43,561 nucleotides of DNA from Macrostomum lignano (Eukaryota): assembly GCA_002269645.1 (NCBI GenBank), contig NIVC01004513.1:1-43561 (forward strand), written 5' to 3'. The notes under the pieces are model-generated. The model did not search any database. It saw nothing but the letters and a program-made list of their open reading frames with translations, and was not told the origin of the DNA. The translations under genes were made by a program, and so were the position numbers. This document shows positions 4,425 through 41,294 of the stretch, in pieces. Each line of letters opens with the position of its first letter. Positions within the stretch are counted from its first letter, which is position 1.

Positions 4425-7400
4425 ATGAAAGGTGCATTCTTTAACGACTCATCTGAAGGAGCCAACGCTACTGGCAATGGCACCGAGGACGATTGCGCTA
4501 AAAGCTTACGTCTCTTCACTGACAGCGAGCGCCGCTTCATTCTTGTCACTGACGTTGGTCTATCCTCCGCAATCTGCTTGCTTGGCCTGCTTCTCAATTC
4601 ACTGTCTATTGTCGTGCTCAAGCGAGATGTGCGCCGATCATCAATGAGTATTCTACTCCTGGCTCTTGCAATCTGTGAGCTTTTTATTTCCTTTTTGTTA
4701 GTACAAAAAATACAGGGTGCAAACGATGGGATTACCTTTTCGGGTCTAGAAAGGCACCTCCGCACAATCTTTTTCTTCCCAAGACTAACAGTATTTCAGG
4801 TTTCAACTTAGCGTCGTGGCTTGAACGTTCAGATTTTTTACTTACTCAGATTATACCCCAGAAATATGCCACTCCCAAAAATCGCCACCTTTACATGAAT
4901 TCCTCATTTCTCTAGGAAACAGAGCCTTTCGCGAATTTCAGGAGCTCTGAGCCCATTTCTAACTGACTGGTGGCTGCTTCCCCACCTAATCCCCTTCTAT
5001 TTAGCTTTATGCTATTCGAGATACTATTTCTTTTTTCACTAGATTACCAGCATAGATATGCATCCTAATTTGATGCATATTTTATCAACCCGAGAATGGA
5101 CGTCGTGTTGCTTTTATCAAAATGCTTTTAGTGAACTTCTTGTAGTGCAAGATAAGAAATGTGACGTGAGGAACAATATGTATAAGGATTCTTTAGTGCA
5201 AGAAAGGATTTAGCGTGAAAGAAAATCTCCCGTTTACAGCAAAAGAAGCTCGATCGCCAGAGCCAAGGCTTAGTTAAACTGAGACGTTTCACTTCGGATT
5301 GACGCGTTTGCTCACGGCCCGATCTCAACTCTCGCACTCGTCTTTTGAAAAGTTGTTCATCTTGATTTTTGAGCTCGCTATCGGTACTTCTTTAAATCCC
5401 GATCGCCCCCTGGAGCGCGCACTGGCTGAGTGTTTCCAGCTCGTACCAAGAGTGAGTGGCCGACTGTGAGGCCAGTGGAGGAGGGGGGGGGAGAAAAAAG
5501 TTAGCAAAGTGAGCCAGGGAGCAAGAAGCTTTTTCTCTTTTCGCTTTGCCTGATTGAGCATACAAACCCCCGGTTAATATCGCAACTTGCGTTCGGCTTG
5601 ATTAGCCAGGAGATTCGCCGGCGAGAGCCCTTTTGCTCCTTTGCTCTGATGCAGCTTAATCATCCTTTCGTTTCTCTTGACTGGCATCCCGAGAGACTGT
5701 TTATCAGAAGAAAATTCCAACTTGAGTCATTTTTGGACCCCCGGGAGGGAACGCGCTTGCAGCTACGAGTAACTCACGAGCAACTCAAGGCTCCTGCTGA
5801 GTATGTATATATTAACCAGTGATTAAGAACAGTTTGACTTTTCCCTGTATTTAAGCTTGGCACACTTTCGACTTTGCCCGTCGAAATTTTCTTATAAAAA
5901 AATAATCTAGTCATTTATAACGAAATCGTTTAAACAAGAGTTCTTTTTGTTCGGTGCATACGCTCGTATGTATACGAGACCCAATAAAGTACTGACATTT
6001 TCAGTCCTGTTGTACAACTGATTTCAGGTGACATTTCGATTTCGCTTTTCGTTAATTTCAGCGGAAATTAATTAATTCTTCGATCTACCAATGCATGACG
6101 TTTGCAGTAGGCTGTGATTCCAAAGGGTCAGGGTCGCCACTGAGTTGTCAGCCGGTAACTTGGCTACTGTTGCCTAAGCACCATATTGAAGTCCATTTTG
6201 ATCAATGCATGATTAGTTCTGATCAGCGTGTACGAGTACAGAAAACCAATTCTAGCTGGGTTGGGCCTCTGGAACTCATCATCCGGCACAGAGTTTGATG
6301 CACCGGGATGCAAATGATACGCTTGTTGAATACACTCTTTTGTCCTAATTTTGTTCTTATTTATAAAAAATTGCAGCCTTCCTCCACTGTAGCTGAACTT
6401 GAAGCACACATGCGGGATAAATTAAGTTTCTGTTTCTTCTCTGTAACAGCTGTAATAAAAAATCTTAAGTGGATTCAGGCGCTGTCAATCAACGAACTTA
6501 TTAGTATGCTATTCTATTGGATATTCTATTGGATATGTGGGAAAAGTTTTACTTCAAACTTTCCCTCTTCAAATTTTCCCCTGTTTTATTTCGAGCGTAA
6601 TGATTAAAGTACGCTTTTACCCGCGTAAGAACGGTCGTTAACGAAACACTGTACCTGAATCTGTCACAATTCAGTGGCAAGACATTCTACCGACACCCAA
6701 CCAACTGATTTTCTTCATTGCAGTCGATTTGACCTTCATCTTACTGTCGGCGCCCTACTTCGTTGTGTACATGGGCCTGGGCTCCATCATCCAGGACTCA
6801 CATGGCGTAACTCTGCAGACATGGCTCCATGCCAGTCCCGGCATTCAGTTAATCCTGCCAGCTGTTTATTATCTGGGCAATGTTGCACGAACAGGTCGGA
6901 ACTGGATTGTCCTGCTGGTGGCACTGGATCGCTATATGGTTGTGCAGAATCCGTTCTTATCCACGCAGCGCAGCAATCCGAAGCGGTCAAGGCTTTACTG
7001 CATATGCGTCACGATTACGGCCATGTTTTACAACTTCCCGCTATTCCTGGAGTATAAATCGGATACGATAAAGTGCTTAAATATCAGCTTGATTTTGGCG
7101 CGCCCGAAAAGTCTGGGTAGTGCGTACATGTTTATATATAAGAAATTGCTGTACATTCTCCTGCTTACAGTTGGGCCTATGTTATGCCTGACGGCCCTTA
7201 ACATTCTTTTGATTCGAAGTTTGCTGGTGGCCTCGCGAATCCGCGCCGCCATTACTCGGGAGACCACGCGGCGCACTGAGGAGACCAAAATGCTGGTCGT
7301 CATTATTGCCGTGTTCGTGCTTACCGAGATACCTGGCACCATCTGGCACATGCTCCTGGGCACAAAATTCGACAAGAGCGCATGGTTCAACTCATACTTG

Positions 7401-7832
7401 TACTCGGTTGGCTCGCTACTGACACTATTCAATTCCGCTATCAACTTTTTCATTTACTGCGTTTGGAGTCGCAACTTTCGGCGCAACATGCTCTACGCCA
7501 TGCGCCGGCGAAAGAAGCCACCGGCCCGGGTGATTCGCTTTGACTCCGACTCAGACCGCACCCGGCAGCTCTTGCTACAGCAGCAGCAGCAGCAGCTGCT
7601 GTGTGTTCGGCAGCCACCGGGTCCCGAGCAGCAGCGACATCAACAGCGCGCGGAGTCCCTTCCTATGCAAGTTCTGCGCGCTTCACCGTTGAACAGTGCA
7701 GGCGGTGTCGCTGATGGCTGCGGTGTTGCTGGAGGCTCTGTTGATGAAAACTGTGACAGTAGAAGTGACAGCAGTGACCGCAATCACAATTTTCAGCAGC
7801 AGCGCGTGCAAATCAATCCCCTGCGTGTGTAA
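4425..7832 (+). CDS. Class A (rhodopsin-like) peptide GPCR, FMRFamide-receptor-like; join(4425..4674,6724..7832), 452 aa
   Basis: Exon 1 has an ATG, N-glycosylation sequons (NDS, NAT, NGT), TM1 and the start of TM2. The GT donor at 4675 and AG acceptor at 6722-6723 join in phase 1 to give LALAIFDL. Exon 2 has ALDRY (TM3), the remaining TM helices, NSAINFFIY (NPxxY-like) and a Gln-rich tail. Confidence 0.9.
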
Positions 7833-9098: not shown

Positions 9099-9547
9099 TT
9101 TGGGTACACGAGCTATAGCCCTTCAAAATAAGCAGAAATGCTCTAAATTGCTTTTGGGTACACGAGCTATAGCCCTTCAAAATAAGCAGAAATGCTCTAA
9201 ATTGCTTTTGGGTACACGAGCTATAGCCCTTCAAAATAAGCAGAAATGCTCTAAATTGCTTTTGGGTACACGAGCTATAGCCCTTCAAAATAAGCAGAAA
9301 TGCTCTAAATTGCTTTTGGGTACACGAGCTATAGCCCTTCAAAATAAGCAGAAATGCTCTAAATTGCTTTTGGGTACACGAGCTATAGCCCTTCAAAATA
9401 AGCAGAAATGCTCTAAATTGCTTTTGGGTACACGAGCTATAGCCCTTCAAAATAAGCAGAAATGCTCTAAATTGCTTTTGGGTACACGAGCTATAGCCCT
9501 TCAAAAATGCCCCAAATGGCTTTTGGGTACAGGAGTTCTAGCCCTTT
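9099..9547. repeat. 54 bp minisatellite, ~8.3 copies
   Basis: Near-perfect tandem unit TTTGGGTACACGAGCTATAGCCCTTCAAAATAAGCAGAAATGCTCTAAATTGCT. Confidence 0.97.
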
Positions 9548-9913: not shown

Positions 9914-12900
9914 ATGTCTAATCCATCCGCACCGGCTGCAGAAGAGCTTGCTTCCGATCAGATCTTTATCGATTTCGAAATCGATAGCGAGTGGAAAAAG
10001 TGCATCTACAGTGACTGCAGCAGAGCGGGACCACAGCGGTCTCGAAATAACTCTTCCACCGCCCTACCGGCGAGCTCAAGTCCTGTTCCAGTGGTGAGGC
10101 TTTTTAAAATCTCCTGAATATACGCAACTCACGCCCACTGTAGGCCTAAAATGAGACTGCGAATAGTAAAACCATTTAAATATAGTGTTCAAGAATCAAG
10201 AACTACTCCTAACTACTACTAGAGCTTACTAGTCTCGCGCAGTGCCAGTGGTTTAGATTGCTTCTAACCAGAGAAACCCGCCTACGGCCACAGCCAGAGC
10301 CGGGCTTCCTGCACGGCTGCCAGAAGACTTTGCGACAGTCCTTTGAGGCCACGAGCCTTCGTCGGGATGCGCACAGTGTCACCCTCTGGCTGTGCGTCAG
10401 GAAGCACAATTACGAGAACTACTTGTGGCAGTTTGTGCGCCTTGGCCGGTTCCACGGGAGCGAAGCGTACTCAAACTTGTCGCTGTGGACTGTTCAGCTG
10501 CGAGTTCGAATGCACCGACGAGTTCCCTTTGGTTGTCTTCTGCGAGGTCTTTGCTGCCGCTTCGGGCTCGGCTCGACAAGTGAGGCTCTTAAACTGTGTT
10601 TGGACGGCTTCTACGGCATGCCTGGCTTTGGCGACATATTTGGAAACCATAGTGACGGTAAGCTGTGAGCCATGGCATATTATTAAACTTACTTTAAATT
10701 ATATTATACTGAAGTAGTATATTAAAGTTCATTTTTTACTTCACTACTTGTCGCACAAATTGAGTCACGTCACATAACAATGAAGATTGCGGTGCGAAAA
10801 CAAAAAAATAGAAGACATTTAAGATTGACAAGCAAAAAATAGCTACGAAATTTTAACATAGTACTTGGGGCTCTGAGCACTTCAACGTTGAGAACTCGAG
10901 TGATGCGGAGCTGTGCTCAAATTCGTGTGCACCACGCCAGAAGAGGCACCCTCTGCGTTCAACCAGGCCCAAGGCGGAGACATTCTACCATTGTCTGTCT
11001 CGAAAACCACAGACACAATCGATCATTGTCTGCCTCCAAAACCATAGACACAATCTACCATTGTCTACCTCCAAAACCATAGACACAATCTACCATTGTC
11101 TACCTCCAAAACCATAGACACAATCTACCATTGTCTGCCTCCAAAACCACAGACACAATCGATCATTGTCTGCCTCCAAAACCACAGACACAATCGATCA
11201 TTGTCTGCCTCCAAAACCATAGACACAATCTACCATTGTCTACCTCCAAAACCATAGACACAATCTACCATTGTCTACCTCCAAAACCATAGACACAATC
11301 TACCATTGTCTGCCTCCAAAACCATAGACACAATCTACCCTTGTCTGCTTCAAAAAACACAGACACAATCTACCATTTACCATACAACCTCCAGAACTAT
11401 GGACCCAATCTACCCATTTTTTAGACTGGTGTCCCCAAATCGAGAGTTAAAAAAGTGGATGACAGACAAACTTGTGCTAAACAGTCCTGTTTTTCACATT
11501 TAGATGCAGTTCCGTGGATGGAAATCTCAAATCAATCAACGGCGGACAGCCTCCAGCTACACGATGGAGACATTATATTTGTCAGCTATTCAAACGAAAA
11601 ACTCGAAAGCCTGGCTAGAGCTCGGAAGCGTGCTCTCGTAAATCAGTCGGCATCCAGCAACGTTGCTCGGTCTTTTGCTCCCAGAAGCAGTACAACCAGC
11701 GATACTGACTCTATTTCTTTAGCACCATTCGGAAAGCTTTCAAAGCCAATCTCGCAGAATGCCATGCCACTGGCAGATTCGGTCTCGCCGCCGCCACTGC
11801 ACATGGCGACAAAGATGCCTACGCAGCCTCGGGCCCGGTGCGCATCAATGCCCGCGGCTCACCCGGGCCAGCCAATGTGCATCTCTGCCGCCGCCACCTC
11901 GGCAGACATCCAGTTCTGTGAGGCGGTTATCAACACCAGCAAAACAGAGTTGGTGCATTTACGACTTGGTTTTTCTTTCTTTGTCTATGCGGCTTTGACT
12001 TATGACCCCAGGAAAAATATTTTCATACACGATACCTGGTTGATTCTTCAACCAGGCTTTAGCCACTTCATTCAGTGTGTAGGCTCTCATATTTCGTATC
12101 AATCGGATCAGATTATTGAGATTTTCATTTACCAATTTTTATGATATCTCGTAAACATCTAACTGATTAACAAACAAACAGGTTAGACCAAAGCCTGGCT
12201 GAGGATGGCATCGAGACAGAAGTGTTCGCAAAAGATGGCTGGGGCCTTCATCCCGGTGCACTAAATAAGCTACATCAAGCGCATTCAGACATTGGAGACC
12301 TCGTGCGCGTGTCCTATCCCAGCTCCAAGCGTACAGAGAAACTTGGCTTAGTGCTCACACCGGAGCTGATGACTTGGATGTTGGACGCTGCCAAAGATCA
12401 CCGCACTCCACTCATCCATCCACTGCTCCCGAAAATACGGGCAAAGGTGTTCAGGTGCGACACAGCCTCAGACGTTGATGCCGCCGATGGACTCGGAGCT
12501 GGCATCGGAGCTGGTAGAGGAGCTCTTGAGGAGCTGCGAAATTTCGCCAGCAAAGTTGACAGCATGCTGCGGGTCCGCTGCGCCGGCTCAGGAAGCTTCT
12601 TGGATATCTGGTCGCCAGAGAGTGCAGCCTATTTTGTCGTGGATACTTTCTTTGGTTCCTCGATCTGCAGCATCTATGGAATCGAGCGGGACCATCGCTT
12701 CCACTCGTACGCTGTGGACGCAGCGTTGCATGAGCTTGAAAAAGGTTTTGTGACATTCTTCAGCGGCAATTCCGGTAGTCAAGCAAAATTGCGTAAAGCC
12801 GACCTGGACAAAGCCTGGGAGAATCTCTATCGCCTGCACCCGACAGCCCAGGAGCTGGCTGCCGCTGAGCCATGTCATCATTTCAAGGATTTACTCAACA

Positions 12901-14800
12901 GAGCCCTAAAGAGTGCGTGCAACTGCTTGTTGACTGTTTGATTTACCATATATCGGCCGTCCTAACCAAAACGCTATGAGCATAGACACTGGCACAGGGA
13001 ACAGAACAGCAGTGCCTGTCCTAACCAAAACGCTATGAGCATAGACACTAGCACAGGGAACAGAACAGCAGTGCCTGTCCTAACCAAAACGCTATGAGCA
13101 TAGACACTAGCACAGGGAACAGAACAGCAGTGCCTGTCCTAACCAAAACGCTATGAGCATAGAAACTGGCACAGGGAACAGAACAGCAGTGCCCGTCCTA
13201 AGCAAAACGCTATGAGCATAGACACTGGCACAGGGGACAGAACAGCAGTGCCTGTCCTAACCAAAACGCTATGAGTATAGACACTGGCACAGGGAACAGA
13301 ACAGCAGTGCCTGTCCTAACCGGACCAAAACACTATGAGCATAGACACTGGCACAGGGAACAGAATGGCAGCGCCCACGCCTCTTGTGTTCCACTTTAAA
13401 GTTGATAACCAAAATGCTCACTTTTAGTGGAAACCGGGTCTGACCAATACAAGTCGCACCTCCAATCTAAACTAGCAGCAATAGCTTTATTTGTTATCTC
13501 AGAAAATTAACTCATGTATTTTCCAGATCCAAATAAGTCTTGGAGAGCCTTTGTCGGCTGCAGCATCAACTGTCTCTATAGCGACTACAGTGCTAAGAAA
13601 GCAGCTTTCTGGGCAATTCACTATCTCATATCTCACACAGCCGTGCAGGAGAGCCTGTTAGCCGAGATCGATTCCATGGCGACCGCAGCAAGACCGCACG
13701 AATTTCGGCGATTGACGCTCAAGGAGCTTGATGAGATGCCATTTCTTGGTGGGTGACACTTGCTTTGATTCTATTGAATATTTCGCGAAGCTCAGAGTCA
13801 ACTTTTCATTTCAGAGGCCTTCGTAAAAGAAGTTTACCGGCTCACGTCGGGGCAGTTCGTTAGCTTCAGAGCTGGAACTGACTTGTTGTTGCAGACGCAG
13901 AAGAACTCTGAAGGCATCTGCTTGCACAGCGGTGAAGAGATCGGGGTGCTGCTTCGTTCATTGAACATGGACCCCAGTCTGTTCAAAAATCCAGAGGTGA
14001 GTTTTTGGCTGTTAGTACTGAAAGTGCAGGTGAACATAGATATATGTTGTTAGTTATTCTGGGTCTAAATTACTCAGTACTAGCTTAAGATTAGTGATTA
14101 CTTTTGACATTCGCTTCGATATGGTTATAAGTAAAAAAGCTAGCGAACTATTTAGCAGCATTCAGATCTTAAAAATCTAAAGTCATTTCATTCTTTTGGA
14201 ATAGAAGATCATAATCCGGTGTGGTTTGCGAAGCTTAAAATACGGCCTGCCAAGCTACTTATTCAGGGGAGGAGGGTTGGTGCCGTACGTAAGGGTGGTG
14301 GTCTACTTGTAGAGTCTCGAAGTCAAAAGCAGAACTTTTGAGATGTCGTTCAGACTTTACAATGCACACTCCGATCTCCTTGGCGGCAGCAATGACACGA
14401 CACCTTGAATCCCACTTGAAGTATCGTAGAACGAATTCAATCCTAACTGGGATGATTTCTAGTGTGCTTCAACAAAGTCTTTTATTGCCGTACAGAAATG
14501 CGAATTCCCGTCCATTGTGCCACACAGGCGTTCCAGCCGCAGCGCTTTCTGTTTGAGACCCAGCATGCGGAGCTCCTGGCCCTGCCGTTCGGCTGTCTGT
14601 GGCCTCGCCGGCGCCTCGGGCTGTTGAAGCTTAAGCTGTTCTTGGTGCTGCTGCTGAGCCGGTGCCGCATTCGGGCTGATGAAGGCACAGGCGCTCAGGT
14701 TGACGCCAGCGCCTTCTGCGTTGATATTCTGCCCTGGACGGAAGACGTTGTCTTTCAGTTCCAGGCCAGGGAGCAGATGAGAGCGACATTTACGCTTTAG
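9914..14800 (+). CDS. Predicted SUMO-like-domain / cytochrome P450 fusion protein, 815 aa; join(9914..10093,10243..10657,11504..11948,12182..12912,13527..13748,13815..13996,14528..14800)
   Basis: All six introns are GT-AG with matching phases (0,1,2,1,1,0), giving 2448 nt without an internal stop. The N-terminal part aligns by eye to SUMO and the C-terminal part has P450 motifs. The exon 1-2 and exon 3-4 joins are the least certain. Confidence 0.55.
10492..11583 (+). other. SUMO-like (Rad60/NIP45 SLD-type ubiquitin-fold) domain split by the 10658-11503 intron
   Basis: VQLRVRMHRRVPFGCLLRGLCCRFGL..ALKLCLDG...EISNQSTADSLQLHDGDIIFV resembles SUMO [52 protein letters not shown]. There is no C-terminal di-Gly. 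Confidence 0.6.
10984..11378. repeat. 35 bp intronic minisatellite, ~11 copies
   Basis: Unit CAATCTACCATTGTCTACCTCCAAAACCATAGACA with minor variants. Confidence 0.95.
12182..14800 (+). CDS. Cytochrome P450 module, CYP7/CYP8/CYP39-like, 4 exons (12182..12912,13527..13748,13815..13996,14528..14800); lacks N-terminal membrane anchor and canonical heme Cys
   Basis: N-half pattern LHQAHSDIGDLVRV...LVLTPELM...IRAKVF; I-helix end AAFWAIHYL..VQESLLAEID; ExxR (KEVYR); DPSLFKNPEAFQPQRF (PERF); heme loop LPFGCLWPRRRLGLLKLKLF. Confidence 0.85.
12959..13375. repeat. 59 bp intronic minisatellite, ~7 copies
   Basis: Unit CCTAACCAAAACGCTATGAGCATAGACACTGGCACAGGGAACAGAACAGCAGTGCCTGT, lying between two P450 exons. 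Confidence 0.95.
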
Positions 14801-15174: not shown

Positions 15175-16491
15175 GGCTACTCACACCTGTCTCCCAGACT
15201 CAGTTTACTGAGATTTGAGTAGAAGGCTACTCACACCTGTCTCCCAGACTCAGTTTACTGGGATTTGAGTAGATGGCTACTCATACCTGTCTCCCAGACT
15301 CAGTTTACTGGGATTTGAGTAGAAGGCTACTCACACCTGTCTCCCAGACTCAGTTTACTGGGATTTGAGTAGATGGCTACTTACACCTGTCTCCCAGACT
15401 CAGTTTACTGGGATTTGAGTAGATGGCTACACCTGTCTCCCAGACTCAGTTTACTGGGATTTGAGTAGATGGCTACTCACACCTGTCTCCCAGACTCAGT
15501 TTACTAGGATTTGAGTAGATGGCTACTCACACCTGTCTCCCAGACTCAGTTTACTGGGATTTGAGTAGATGGCTACTTACACCTGTCTCCCAGACTCAGT
15601 TTACTGGGATTTGAGTAGATGGCTACTCACACCTGTCTCCCAGACTCAGTTTACTAGGATTTGAGTAGATGGCTACTCACACCTGTCTCCCAGACTCAGT
15701 TTACTGGGATTTGAGTAGATGGCTACTCACACCTGTCTCCCAGACTCAGTTTACTGGGATTTGAGTAGATGGCTACACCTGTCTCCCAGACTCAGTTTAC
15801 TGGGATTTGTAGATGGCTACACCTGTCTCCCAGACTCAGTTTACTGGGATTTGAGTAGATGGCTACACCTGTCTCCCAGACTCAGTTTACTGGGATTTGT
15901 AGATGGCTACACCTGTCTCCCAGACTCAGTTTACTAGGATTTGAGTAGATGGCTACTCACACCTGTCTCCCAGACTCAGTTTACTGGGATTTGAGTAGAA
16001 GGCTACTCACACCTGTCTCCCAGACTCAGTTTACTGGGATTTGTAGATGGCTACACCTGTCTCCCAGACTCAGTTTACTGGGATTTGAGTAGATGGCTAC
16101 ACCTGTCTCCCAGACTCAGTTTACTGGGATTTGTAGATGGCTACACCTGTCTCCCAGACTCAGTTTACTGGGATTTGAGTAGAAGGCTACTCACACCTGT
16201 CTCCCAGACTCAGTTTACTGGGATTTGAGTAGATGGCTACACCTGTCTCCCAGACTCAGTTTACTGGGATTTGTAGATGGCTACACCTGTCTCCCAGACT
16301 CAGTTTACTGGGATTTGAGTAGATGGCTACACCTGTCTCCCAGACTCAGTTTACTGGGATTTGAGTAGATGGCTACACCTGTCTCCCAGACTCAGTTTAC
16401 TGGGATTTGTAGATGGCTACACCTGTCTCCCAGACTCAGTTTACTGGGATTTGAGTAGATGGCTACACCTGTCTCCCAGACTCAGTTTACT
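15175..16491. repeat. Minisatellite with 50/47/46/43 bp unit variants, ~27 copies
   Basis: Unit GGCTACTCACACCTGTCTCCCAGACTCAGTTTACTGGGATTTGAGTAGAT; variants carry a 4 bp and/or a 3 bp deletion. Confidence 0.97.
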
Positions 16492-17594: not shown

Positions 17595-20500
17595 CTAGCA
17601 GTAGCTGCAGGACGCTGGCCGGTGACCGCTCTGGTGCCGCGAGTCCGCCTGGGCGATCGAGCCGCTGGTTTGGAAGTTTTGCTTTGCCAGAAGCTTCCTG
17701 AAGATCATTGAATTGATAAGTCAAGTTTCAATCCATCAGCGCCGCTATTTAGGTCTTGGGTATTAATTATTATTAATAACGGGGTATGATAGGGAATAAA
17801 AAAGAAACGAAGTTATATTGTTTCTTCAGCACTTCTTCATGATTTCGTTTACAACAAAAGCCATCAGCCATAGCCTCCTCCCCTCAGCCCTGCGAAGCCA
17901 TTCAAACCACAGTCAGAAGCTGACCTAACTAGCACCAATCAGATCCCATGAGGCAAGTTGAGCAGCTATGTAATTCAGTAGTGCACTAAAATTGAGTTGT
18001 CATCATTCTGATTGTGTATTTGCCATCATGCTGATCGTGTATTTGCCATCATGCTGATCGTGTATTTGCCATCAATCTGATTGTGTATTTGCCATCATGC
18101 TGATCGTGTATTTGCCATCATGCTGATTGTGTGTTTGCCATCATGCTGATCGTGTATTTGCCATCATGCTGATCGTGTATTTGCGATCATGCTGATTGTG
18201 TATTTGGCATCATGCTGATCGTGTATTTGCCATCATTCTGATCGTGTATTTGCCATCATGCTGATCGTGTATTTGCCATCAATTTTGCCATCATGCCATC
18301 ATGCTGATAGTGTATTTGCCATCATGCTGATCGTGTATTTGCGATCATGCTGATTGTGTATTTGGCATCATGCTGATCGTGTATTTGCCATCAATCTGAT
18401 CGTGTATTTGCCATCATGCTGATTGTGTATTTGCCATCATGCTGATTGTGTATTTGCCATCATGCTGATCGTGTATTTGCCATCATGCTGATTGTGTATT
18501 TGCCATCATGCTGATCGTGTATTTGCCAGCATGCTGATCGTGTATTTGCCATCATGCTGATCGTGTATTTGCCATCATGCTGATCGTGCATTTGCCATCA
18601 TGCTGATCGTGTATTTGCCATCATGCTGATCGTGTATTTGCCATCATTCTGATTGTGTATTTGCCATCATGCTGACCGTGTGATGACTGAAAACACCAAC
18701 TGAAAACTGATGCGTCGCACGATATTTCAAGCTGATAAATACAAATTTACGTACTTTGTCCGGATCGCTGCAGCTTGGGCGAGATGGACCAGTGAAGGCT
18801 TGAATTTCATAGTTAACGTGGAAATCGTTATAGCACGCTTTTCAAGAGCATCTAGGCAGAAGAAGAAAGGCAACTTACCGTCCTATTGTTTGGAAGCAGA
18901 GGTCAACATTGTGCCCCGTCCTGGCGCTCGTCTCCATAAAACACATTATGTCGCACTCCTGTGGGCAGCGTTGAAATTAAAATGACCCCCTCGATTTTCT
19001 GGATTGAAAACTCAGAATTAACCTGTGTGACCCACCTGAGCTAGCCGCTGCCCTTCGTGAGCGCTAACCTGCCTTTCAGAGTCCAGATCAGCCTTGTTGG
19101 CTACCAAAATGATGAATACATCCTCAGAGCCGTATTCGCGAATGTCCGTGAGCCAGGAGCGGACACTGCTGAATGTCTGGCGGCTGGTCAGATCGTAGAA
19201 TAGCAGAATAGCTGTGCTCGGCAAAAAGTCGGATTGAGAGCTTCCAGCTCACTGAGACTGTTTTCATTGATGCAGTCACTCAACAGACCTATGCTTTCGC
19301 TTCTGCACTTGTCTAAATTAATTCTTCCCATCTCAGCCTCTTGCCTACCTGCCGGTTCTTCTTTATACTCGAATTTAAGCAAATGACCGCTGCCTTTTAT
19401 CACGCTTACTTTTTAACTACTCGTAACTCTAGTCGAATGGTTTTGTCACTTTGGAACTACTAAAGTAGGAATTCACATTTCCATGATAGCAATACACTTG
19501 CGCATGCGCGTGAAAGAGGAAACGGTTTGCAATGCTCACAGTCAGCATCTCTGTAGTACGCACTGGTGATGCTCCGATATCGCTCCGTACCGGCCGTGTC
19601 CCAGACCTGAAAGATGGGACACGTGCTGCATGGTTGGTCAATTGCATGAGCGCAAAGTTTTCAGCTCTCTGGGTTTAAAATGTGGAAAGAATAAATATCT
19701 GCTCAAGAGAAAGATGATTCACATTCTAGAAGCTTCTATATTTTTCTTACTTCATGTTTCTTCATCAGAAATAGCTCGTAGTCCTGGGCAATACAGTAGA
19801 AACATATACGTATGCATCCTAGCAGCATAGATTTCGTCAAACTAGCTTTGTGAGCAATTGGAATTATTCTAATTGAGCTAAAAGTGAACTGTAAAAGTAC
19901 GAGCGTATATTTTACCTGAAAGCGAACTCTGTAGCCATCCACTGGCAGTGTTTTGCTCTGGAATAAACATATATATAAATTACTGACTGAGGATCTGGGA
20001 GGCTGCCAAGCTGCAAAACGATTGTATGTACGAGTCTTGAAGCATAGAATTTGTAAAGACGGTCTCTTTGATCGTGGGCTCATAGTGCCCGGAGGGTGCA
20101 AGTGTCCCTGGGGGGGGGCCTTTCAGGTGGATGACCGCGCTCTTAGCCGCGTGGGCTGTTTGCGCAAGGTGAACTGACCTGCGCAGGGAACTGGTAAATG
20201 GACCACTTGGTATCGCCATGAGCCTCAAAAGTTAGTGCCCCTACTATAGTGTGACCGATTTAATTTTTTAACATTCTACATTTCAGCAACATGAAACATG
20301 AATTGGCTCGAAAGGTTCCAATGGGGAAGTCTCGGCAATGGAAAAGCTGTGACATATATATATACCCCAGGCCGCTGAAACATCGTCATAAAATGGACGG
20401 GAAAACCTCGTCAGGAAGAAATGAGATGCTCGCTGAAAAAATAGCATCTCATAGATCGTTCTCCATAATCTATTAAGTTAATTTGCATGAGACGCACATC

Positions 20501-23520: not shown

Positions 23521-36497
<12,977 letters not shown>

Positions 36498-39995: not shown

Positions 39996-41294
39996 ATGGC
40001 ATCGTTGTGCTCAGTGGTTTGCAATATTTTACTCGCAGTACTCTGTGCCAGTGCACTTACAGGAGCCATAAGGGAAGAAAATGCGACCCAGCTAGAGGTC
40101 ATCATGCACCAATATGATCGCCTCTTTCGGCCATCGCCTTCGCTGGATCAGAACAATGGAACCAATGACAAAGCCGACGAAATGCTACAAACTGCTACTC
40201 AAGTTGAAATCGGCGTCAATGTGCTTAGCCTTGGCCCAGTTGATCAGGTACGAATGGAGTTCAGGGTTGAGATGCAACTGCTAATGCGCTGGATTGACCC
40301 ACGTTTGCGCCGAAACAGCGCCTCAAAGTCAGTAAGCAGCCAATTTGTTGGTCTGGTCCTTAGCCGCAGGGCGGATTCAGTATGGCTTCCGGGTGTGTAC
40401 TTTCCCGGTGCTACAGTCGTGCGCCGGCCTGACCGGCCATCCAGAAACATTCTGCTTTGGTTGTGGCCGAATGGAATGCTTCAGTACAGCCAGAAGTTGG
40501 ATGTAGTTTTCCGCTGCCGCATGGATGTAAAATGTTTTCCATTCGACACTCAGACTTGCTTAGTTGACATTGGAGTTTTTGACTTGAGCAGCAATGATCA
40601 GCAACTCAGTTGGTTTAAAAATGGAGTCACTTTTGAAAACCCGAATGCTGAGTTCAACAGTGAGTTTCATTCGCCTGTTATCGAAACAGCCAGCGCGGAA
40701 TCGTTTTCAGCCGAGACCGGACTCAACTTCAGTCATCTCACTGCGTCATTTTCCCTGCGCCGACGCCACACTCGTTACATCCTGACTAACTACTTGCCAT
40801 CTACATTTATTGTGCTCACTACTTGGTCATCGTTCGCCATCGATCATAAGTCACCTCCAGCCAGAGTGTCCTTGTCATCTCTATGTCTAGTGGCCCAGCT
40901 TACACAAAGTCTCAGTTTGGAGTCCAAACTGCCCCAGGTGTCATACGTTACCAGTCTCGGCATATGGCACACCGGCTGCATAGCATTTGTGTACCTATCC
41001 TTGCTGGAGTACATGGTCATTAACTTGCTAAGGATCCGGAAGCTGCGGCGACGTAAGCGCCAACAAGCGCTGGCCGCAAAGCGCCGGCGCGGGGGCACAC
41101 TGGGCCCGGCTGCTGCAAGTGAGGCGGCCGCTGCCATTGTGGCTGGTGCCGTAGTTCACCTTAGCAGCGGCCGCAAAGTCTGTTGGTATCTCACGCCCTC
41201 GCGGCTGGACTTATTCTGTCTGTTTGCTTATCCTATTGCCTTCTTTTTGTTCAATGTACTTTACTGGACACTTGCAGTGGACTGGCAGCACTGA
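39996..41294 (+). CDS. Cys-loop (pentameric) ligand-gated ion channel subunit, GABA/glycine-receptor-like anion type, single exon, 432 aa
   Basis: Signal peptide, Cys loop CRMDVKCFPFDTQTC, WIDPRL, four TM segments, PAR motif before M2. Confidence 0.95.
   Translation: MASLCSVVCNILLAVLCASALTGAIREENATQLEVIMHQYDRLFRPSPSLDQNNGTNDKADEMLQTATQVEIGVNVLSLGPVDQVRMEFRVEMQLLMRWIDPRLRRNSASKSVSSQFVGLVLSRRADSVWLPGVYFPGATVVRRPDRPSRNILLWLWPNGMLQYSQKLDVVFRCRMDVKCFPFDTQTCLVDIGVFDLSSNDQQLSWFKNGVTFENPNAEFNSEFHSPVIETASAESFSAETGLNFSHLTASFSLRRRHTRYILTNYLPSTFIVLTTWSSFAIDHKSPPARVSLSSLCLVAQLTQSLSLESKLPQVSYVTSLGIWHTGCIAFVYLSLLEYMVINLLRIRKLRRRKRQQALAAKRRRGGTLGPAAASEAAAAIVAGAVVHLSSGRKVCWYLTPSRLDLFCLFAYPIAFFLFNVLYWTLAVDWQH

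Follow-up and report, generated by a model that had tools for sequence, protein, structure and literature searches.

A candidate P450-fold pseudoenzyme with tryptophan at the heme-thiolate position in the flatworm Macrostomum lignano

Introduction

Cytochromes P450 (P450s) are defined by their axial Cys, and natural homologues that have lost this residue and are still under selection are rare, the well-studied cases being bacterial. These are the EryCII/DesVIII/AknT/TylMIII-type proteins of actinomycetes, which activate glycosyltransferases and are represented by the EryCIII-EryCII structure (PMC3391682). EryCII-type homologues lack the conserved Cys and have no P450 activity; their I to L helices and C-terminal sheets are preserved, their N-terminal half is divergent, and they act as stabilizing, allosteric partners of another protein (PMC3391682; PMC10054333). 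Here, we describe a Cys-less P450 homologue from an animal, the product of the gene BOX15_Mlig033662g2 of the free-living flatworm Macrostomum lignano. The gene is carried by contig NIVC01004513.1, which was analysed in its entirety (43,561 bp, hereafter the window); all coordinates refer to this stretch unless a copy on another contig is named.

The flatworm protein resembles the EryCII type in being a P450 homologue without the heme-ligand Cys, in the conservation of its C-terminal half (I, J, K, and L helices and beta sheets) and the divergence of its N-terminal half, and probably also in being a retained non-catalytic protein. The two lineages are not related: EryCII is bacterial, whereas the flatworm protein is derived from the animal CYP7 clan, with a Cys-to-Trp replacement in a shortened loop and a fusion to a SUMO-like domain. 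Its best matches in sequence and fold are CYP7A1, CYP7B1, CYP8A1 (prostacyclin synthase), CYP39A1, and a lophotrochozoan short-loop subfamily that shares with it a three-residue deletion in the Cys loop and includes the M. lignano paralogues A0A1I8ITJ4 (P0004) and A0A1I8HMK7 (P0010) and a protein of Littorina saxatilis (P0012). CYP7-clan enzymes and the flatworm protein were also scored as alike in having CP after the ligand position. The clan enzymes differ from it in having the ligand Cys, the Gly two residues further on, an I-helix Asn, the His of HxDP, a membrane anchor, and an EPPLVPG motif, none of which is present in the flatworm protein. The gene most probably encodes a thiolate-dead P450-fold pseudoenzyme that has lost its membrane anchor and presumably its heme, has been fused to a SUMO-like domain, and has been kept by selection; we assign this reading a probability of roughly 0.6.

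Results and discussion

Gene structure and P450-like domain

BOX15_Mlig033662g2 was delineated by tblastn and by stitching of its seven exons. All six introns have GT-AG borders, the 2397-nt coding sequence (CDS) contains no internal stop, and the stitched translation is identical to the deposited 798-amino acid (aa) protein PAA47265.1 (P0164). It is also 99% identical to the M. lignano hypothetical protein BOX15_Mlig033662g3, of which g2 is a sister model. The open reading frame (ORF) had been read as free of stops and frameshifts in an earlier prediction made from the sequence of the window (hereafter the original prediction), and this holds for the window and for the CDS in all three genomic copies discussed below. 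The gene and its P450-like part are as follows.

9914-14800, + strand: whole gene BOX15_Mlig033662g2, seven exons, 798 aa plus stop (tblastn and stitched model)
9914-10093, 10294-10657, 11504-11948, 12182-12912, 13527-13748, 13815-13996, and 14528-14800, + strand: exons 1 to 7
12182-14800, + strand: P450-like domain, residues 331-798, exons 4-7 (Pfam, phmmer, AF2, Foldseek, and hydropathy scan)

GenBank models of M. lignano derive from RNA-seq-guided transcript assembly, in which transcripts are divided wherever a trans-splice or poly(A) site occurs (PMC5730564), and BOX15_Mlig033662g2, whose model has this origin, is a real, expressed gene. Its sequence is already public, annotated only as hypothetical. 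The identifier Mlig033662 was not mentioned in the papers or in the supplements of PMC5816591 covered by text search, and the flatworm P450 inventories and P450-pseudoenzyme literature searched contained no description of the gene.

Tryptophan in the Cys column of the Cys-pocket loop

The loop that carries the thiolate ligand in P450s lies in the last exon.

14582-14620, + strand: Cys-pocket loop LPFGCLWPRRRLG, in exon 14528-14800, with Cys731 at 14594-14596, Trp733 at 14600-14602, and Arg735 at 14606-14608

The DNA of this segment reads ctg ccg ttc ggc tgt ctg tgg cct cgc cgg cgc ctc ggg, in which TGG encodes Trp733 and TGT encodes Cys731. When 1.84 billion representative proteins were scanned in full with phmmer, only 466 matches at E <= 1e-3 were obtained, indicating that the protein is very diverged. 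The top P450 matches were the M. lignano paralogues P0004 (29% identity, E = 2e-30) and P0010, followed by the 'CYP7A1-like' protein P0012 of L. saxatilis and two further sequences. In these nearest relatives, which are CYP7-clan proteins of M. lignano and molluscs, the Cys loop is three residues shorter than in CYP7A1 and CYP7B1 and reads FGSLCPG or YGVLCPG instead of FGSGxxxCPG. The corresponding FGCLWPR of the flatworm protein shows the same three-residue deletion between PFG and the ligand position, which places it in the short-loop subfamily, and aligns with FGSLCPG at equal length and without gaps: Ser or Val is replaced by Cys, Leu is kept, Cys is replaced by Trp, Pro is kept, and Gly is replaced by Arg, with the L helix in register. 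The heme-thiolate Cys that characterizes the P450 superfamily is thus missing, Trp733 standing in the Cys column and Arg735 in the Gly column.

The original prediction had put Trp (TGG, 14600-14602) into the Cys slot by anchoring on the downstream helix, with Arg for the following Gly and a Cys two residues upstream, and had proposed a comparison with the closest invertebrate CYP7-like proteins. Direct reading of the codons and the gap-free alignment to those proteins, which do not depend on the helix anchor, give the same assignment, and Arg735 and Cys731 are both seen in the sequence. When the loop was forced onto the canonical PFGxGPRxCxG pattern, the Cys column fell on the third Arg of the flatworm loop, so that, on the alignments made, there is no Cys at the ligand position whichever of them is used. 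Pairwise phmmer alignments to long-loop P450s set Trp opposite the Gly of GPR; this placement was rejected as a loop-length artefact because the nearest relatives have the short loop. The ligand Cys is present in 126 of the 127 related P450 matches that cover this column, the one exception being a protist sequence. Two residues before the ligand, all close relatives carry Ser or Val; a Cys at this point (Cys731) occurs only in the flatworm protein.

Conserved and altered positions of the P450 fold

Four further elements of the domain were located in the alignments to the clan.

13574-13612, + strand: I-helix segment LYSDYSAKKAAFW, in which Ser595 (13589-13591) and Ala596 replace the Asn-Thr of short-loop relatives
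13829-13840, + strand: K-helix ExxR motif (EVYR, residues 653-656), kept
13964-13966, + strand: Asn698, replacing the clan-invariant His of HxDP (His in 11 of 11 relatives)
14537-14548, + strand: PERF-type motif (PQRF, residues 712-715), kept

Conservation was scored over the 42 alignment columns in which 10 or more of the 11 CYP7-clan relatives agree. The flatworm protein retains 24 of these columns, including Glu653 and Arg656 of ExxR, Arg714 and Phe715 of PERF, Trp602, Asp700, Pro707, Gly730, and Pro734, and is altered at the other 18, including C733W, G735R, N595S, and H698N. The original prediction was therefore right that ExxR and PxRF are kept and that several active-site changes occur together. 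Its statement that the I helix lacks AGxxT is also true, but this feature is not special to the protein: AGxxT is absent across the whole CYP7 clan, in which relatives have LHVNYNT or LWASQANT and ExxR and PERF are likewise present. What is special is the pair Ser595 and Ala596, since the I helix reads YSDYSA where relatives have HVNYNT or, in the CYP7A1 type, ASQANT, and the column of Ser595 is Asn in 11 of 11 relatives. R665F and H698N were also considered as lost heme-propionate ligands; this candidate was dropped because Arg666 is adjacent to the Arg column and a heme contact of the HxDP His would be hypothetical, and both are retained only as changes at clan-conserved positions.

The N-terminal half of the domain is strongly diverged. 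The loss of its anchor and the fusion at its N-terminal side had not been part of the original prediction. In the hydropathy scan, the flatworm protein has no window above 1.6 outside the L helix, whereas the N termini of the relatives reach 2.06-2.49, and the EPPLVPG motif, which follows the N-terminal anchor in all relatives, is absent from it in the alignment. The PF00067 match (E = 1.3e-18; 67.4 bits against a cut-off of 22.8) covers profile positions 283-440 of 462, i.e. the C-terminal half only, and phmmer homology to P0004 spans residues 440-790. In the AF2 model, confidence is high only over residues 585-798, which comprise the I to L helices and beta sheets, and the predicted local distance difference test (pLDDT) score is below 50 for residues 338-564. 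Foldseek searches with the model of the P450 domain retrieved animal P450s including CYP7A1 at E of about 2e-11, with template modelling (TM) scores of only 0.37-0.43.

Relationship to the CYP7 clan

The flatworm protein is 17-26% identical to its clan relatives; for comparison, the identity between its paralogue P0004 and the mollusc enzyme is 39%. In a neighbour-joining tree (210 C-terminal columns, distance based, no support values), it falls within the CYP7 clan as sister to the short-loop group, on the longest branch of its clade. By sequence it is best classified as a highly diverged CYP7-clan member of the short-loop (FGSLCPG) subfamily. Because it is nested among Cys-bearing, anchored P450s on the longest branch, its ancestor would have been a normal Cys-bearing, membrane-bound P450 that subsequently evolved fast.

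One other CYP7-like protein without the ligand Cys was encountered, namely P0078 of the protist Diphylleia rotans (EukProt EP00002; CYP7-type I helix LLWESIANLIPTAFW), which has IRPG for ICPG. In contrast to the flatworm protein, P0078 carries Arg at this position in a loop of normal length, still has a hydrophobic segment at its N terminus, and is not fused to a SUMO-like domain, and its Cys loss looks like an event independent of that in M. lignano.

Three genomic copies and selection on the P450 domain

Two further copies of the gene, on contigs L001 and L002, are available for comparison. The window and both copies agree in every base of the loop DNA TGT CTG TGG CCT CGC, the ORF is intact in them with the same exon lengths, and the protein models of an older, independent assembly (P0002, P0003, and P0166) also read Trp. 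An assembly error or an allele at TGG, which the original prediction had thought possible, is thereby rejected, and a frame error at the loop is rejected as well since both other frames of exon 7 run into stops.

The sequenced M. lignano line has large recent duplications (PMC5730564), which account for the three near-identical copies. These diverge by 0.54% in exons and 1.2% in introns. Within the P450 domain, the variable codons comprise 9 synonymous and 3 non-synonymous ones, giving a Nei-Gojobori omega (dN/dS) of 0.10-0.13 and a binomial P of 2e-4 against the neutral expectation of 77% non-synonymous changes. A dN/dS near 1, which the original prediction had named as the sign of a young pseudogene, is therefore not seen in this domain, the comparison being among three copies from M. 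lignano. The N-terminal 330 residues contain 3 synonymous and 5 non-synonymous differences and are thus almost neutral; the five non-synonymous ones (residues 6, 14, 247, 294, and 297) all lie in predicted disordered regions, the last three in the linker described below. Because all three copies share Trp733, the constraint on the P450 domain would have acted after the loss of the Cys.

The copies also differ in intron 2, which is about 5.6 kb in copy g1 (L002, 3745-9313) and 846 bp in the window (10657-11504), implying a large insertion or deletion in one of them.

The SUMO-like domain, the linker, and the fusion

The region upstream of the P450-like domain consists of two parts.

10369-11673, + strand: SUMO-like domain of the beta-grasp type, residues about 86-238, interrupted by intron 2 (10369-10657 and 11504-11673)
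11674-11948, + strand: Ser/Pro/Ala-rich linker, predicted disordered, residues about 239-330

Pfam gave no match for the N-terminal 330 residues or for their homologues. In the phmmer search, residues 55-247 showed 35-41% identity to a family of stand-alone proteins of 218-319 aa, the named members of which are all from M. lignano (P0005-P0008, P0013, P0115, P0130, and P0152 among them), with one further match from a public read archive (Logan). The motif CLDGFYG...PWMEIS of this family lies within a long insert of about 45 residues, and the family is multi-copy and appears to be previously undescribed. An AF2 model, which has a mean pLDDT of 73, reaches 80-95 in the SUMO-like domain, and Foldseek matched this domain to SUMO/Smt3 (E = 4e-5 to 9e-4; target TM scores of 0.65-0.86). 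The predicted fold is therefore SUMO-like by modelling and structural comparison; the domain is internal, being followed by a helix and the linker, and lacks the C-terminal Gly-Gly needed for conjugation, so that it is not a conjugatable modifier. The linker has pLDDT values below 50 at residues 239-328, and no homologues aligned there.

Several observations bear on the reality of the fusion. The same parts are fused in the independent annotation of the older assembly, and the first 62 residues of exon 4 up to residue 393 include no in-frame ATG, leaving the P450 part without an obvious start of its own. The architecture in which a SUMO-like domain is linked to a P450 fold lacking both anchor and Cys was found in no other protein among the 1.84 billion representatives.

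Interpretation and alternative explanations

The history that best accommodates these data would have begun with a duplication of ordinary membrane-anchored, Cys-bearing paralogues. The duplicate may then have lost its N-terminal anchor and EPPLVPG hinge and acquired a SUMO-like beta-grasp domain, connected to it by about 90 residues of disordered linker, while the heme-thiolate Cys was replaced by Trp, the next Gly by Arg, and other clan-conserved active-site residues by various others. The bulky Trp and Arg would fill the proximal pocket, the space in which the loop has to come close to the heme. Since heme iron cannot be coordinated by Trp, the protein most likely has neither thiolate heme binding nor P450 chemistry. 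Since the anchor is gone, it is probably soluble, and it might serve as a binding or scaffold module, possibly for a sterol-like or other lipid ligand or for a partner protein, delivered or regulated through the SUMO-like domain; such a binding or scaffold role is speculative. That the protein is a pseudoenzyme retaining its fold, as the original prediction had proposed, rather than an error or a young pseudogene is supported by TGG in three copies, the intact ORF, the omega of about 0.1, the kept motifs, the modelled C-terminal half, and the joint replacement of the thiolate Cys, its following Gly, the clan I-helix Asn, and the His of HxDP.

Several points weigh against this reading. The loss of heme and of catalysis, although most likely, is deduced from sequence, and Cys731, unique to this protein and only two residues upstream of Trp733, could in principle take over ligation. 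The beta1-4 Arg column holds Phe665, but with Arg666 adjoining, this loss is ambiguous. Model confidence is low for the N-terminal half of the P450 domain, in which Pfam found no match, so that an intact fold is supported for the C-terminal half only. The selection test involves 12 variable codons in very similar copies from one inbred line and could be distorted by gene conversion or mutation bias. Phmmer, sequence, and profile searches found no orthologue in another species. Finally, the fusion of the SUMO-like domain and the P450 fold, although probable, comes from annotation pipelines.

Among the alternatives, a transcribed but functionless relic, either a young unitary pseudogene or a dying duplicate that has yet to acquire stops, is unlikely. 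The gene is lineage-specific, has no database orthologues, is placed at the end of a very long branch with many conserved residues gone, and is almost neutral in its N-terminal and linker regions, all of which would suit such a relic. Nevertheless, its 468-codon P450 frame and the GT-AG borders of all six introns are intact in three copies. Its identity to the nearest paralogue of only about 25% implies a long history, over which stops and frameshifts would have accumulated in a neutral sequence. Together with this intact frame, the low omega makes a neutral relic improbable, and the structural motifs have been kept selectively. Within the limits of a small sample, the P450 domain appears to be under purifying selection and is unlikely to be a decaying pseudogene. 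A heme enzyme with a relocated proximal ligand (Cys731 or another residue) and Trp733 packed against the heme is quite doubtful. Such an enzyme would explain why ExxR, PERF, and the L helix are kept and why the domain is under purifying selection, and the Cys at -2, present only here, could be compensatory; yet Arg has taken the place of Gly735, which lets the loop come near the heme, the Asn of the clan I helix and the His of HxDP are replaced, the N-terminal half is strongly diverged, and the loop, already the shortest in the clan, has little slack for shifting the ligand by two residues. No natural P450 with a shifted thiolate is known.

Less probable still is a soluble, SUMO-like-targeted protein that retains heme, either ligated by Cys731 or thiolate-free with Trp733 stacked proximally, in a proximal environment unlike that of any known natural P450, for redox or peroxidase-like chemistry distinct from P450 monooxygenation. 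An artefact, whether a sequence error at TGG or a mis-joined gene model (merged neighbours, wrong exon, or wrong frame), is the most improbable of the explanations considered. TGG is one substitution away from TGC and TGT, M. lignano has operons, trans-splicing, and a redundant assembly (PMC5730564), and the N-terminal domain occurs in its homologues as a protein of its own. However, the agreement of three contigs and of the older-assembly proteins and the stops in the other two frames of the exon count against an error at this codon, and no single error accounts for the several further residue changes. The missing in-frame ATG in exon 4 and the absence of a cut here by a pipeline that cuts at trans-splice sites argue against merged neighbours, and even with the fusion wrong, the Cys-less P450 domain would remain. 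The thiolate-dead pseudoenzyme kept by selection is thus the reading that we prefer.

Comparison with the EryCII type and implications

EryCII (2YJN) was absent from the 57 PDB sequence matches of the flatworm protein at E <= 0.01. No gene for a glycosyltransferase partner lies nearby; the neighbours encode a G protein-coupled receptor, an Arf-like GTPase, a TB2/DP1 protein, and an ion channel. The flatworm protein may be regarded as analogous to the EryCII type through convergent loss and not as a member of that family. No description of a Cys-less animal P450 homologue was found in the literature searched, and the protein, whose domain architecture is new, would represent a separate loss of the Cys in an animal. 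Confirmation would demonstrate the conversion of a membrane monooxygenase into a soluble, non-catalytic module. P450 counts derived from Pfam matches would wrongly score BOX15_Mlig033662g2 as an enzyme. RNA-interference knockdown is available in M. lignano. Since transgenesis is also available in this species (PMC5730564), a role of the dead P450 is testable there. The scope of these findings is one lineage-specific gene in one species.

Other features of the window

The remaining features of the window are neighbouring genes and ORFs, a probable transposon remnant, and tandem repeats.

6729-7832, + strand: ORF with a rhodopsin-family seven-transmembrane receptor domain (PF00001, E = 2e-13), just upstream of BOX15_Mlig033662g2
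about 17.5-21 kb, - strand: Arf/Ras-like small GTPase gene, downstream of BOX15_Mlig033662g2 (colinearity with L001)
25753-26325, - strand: TB2/DP1/HVA22-family gene, downstream of BOX15_Mlig033662g2
30843-31340, + strand: ORF with a ZSWIM1-3 RNaseH-like/MULE transposase domain in an AT-rich stretch, probably a transposon remnant
39996-41294, + strand: ORF for a Cys-loop ligand-gated ion channel (ligand-binding and transmembrane Pfam domains)
9099-9506: minisatellite array, period 54 bp
10980-11377: minisatellite array, period 35 bp
12959-13365: minisatellite array, period 59 bp
15183-16491: minisatellite array, period 50 bp
17997-18681: minisatellite array, period 23 bp
24657-25623: minisatellite array, period 40 bp

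The six minisatellite arrays are long and clean, comprise up to 30 copies, and are located upstream of, in introns of, and downstream of BOX15_Mlig033662g2. The 59-bp array of intron 4 is shorter in copy L001. Together, the arrays fit the high tandem-repeat content reported for the M. lignano genome.

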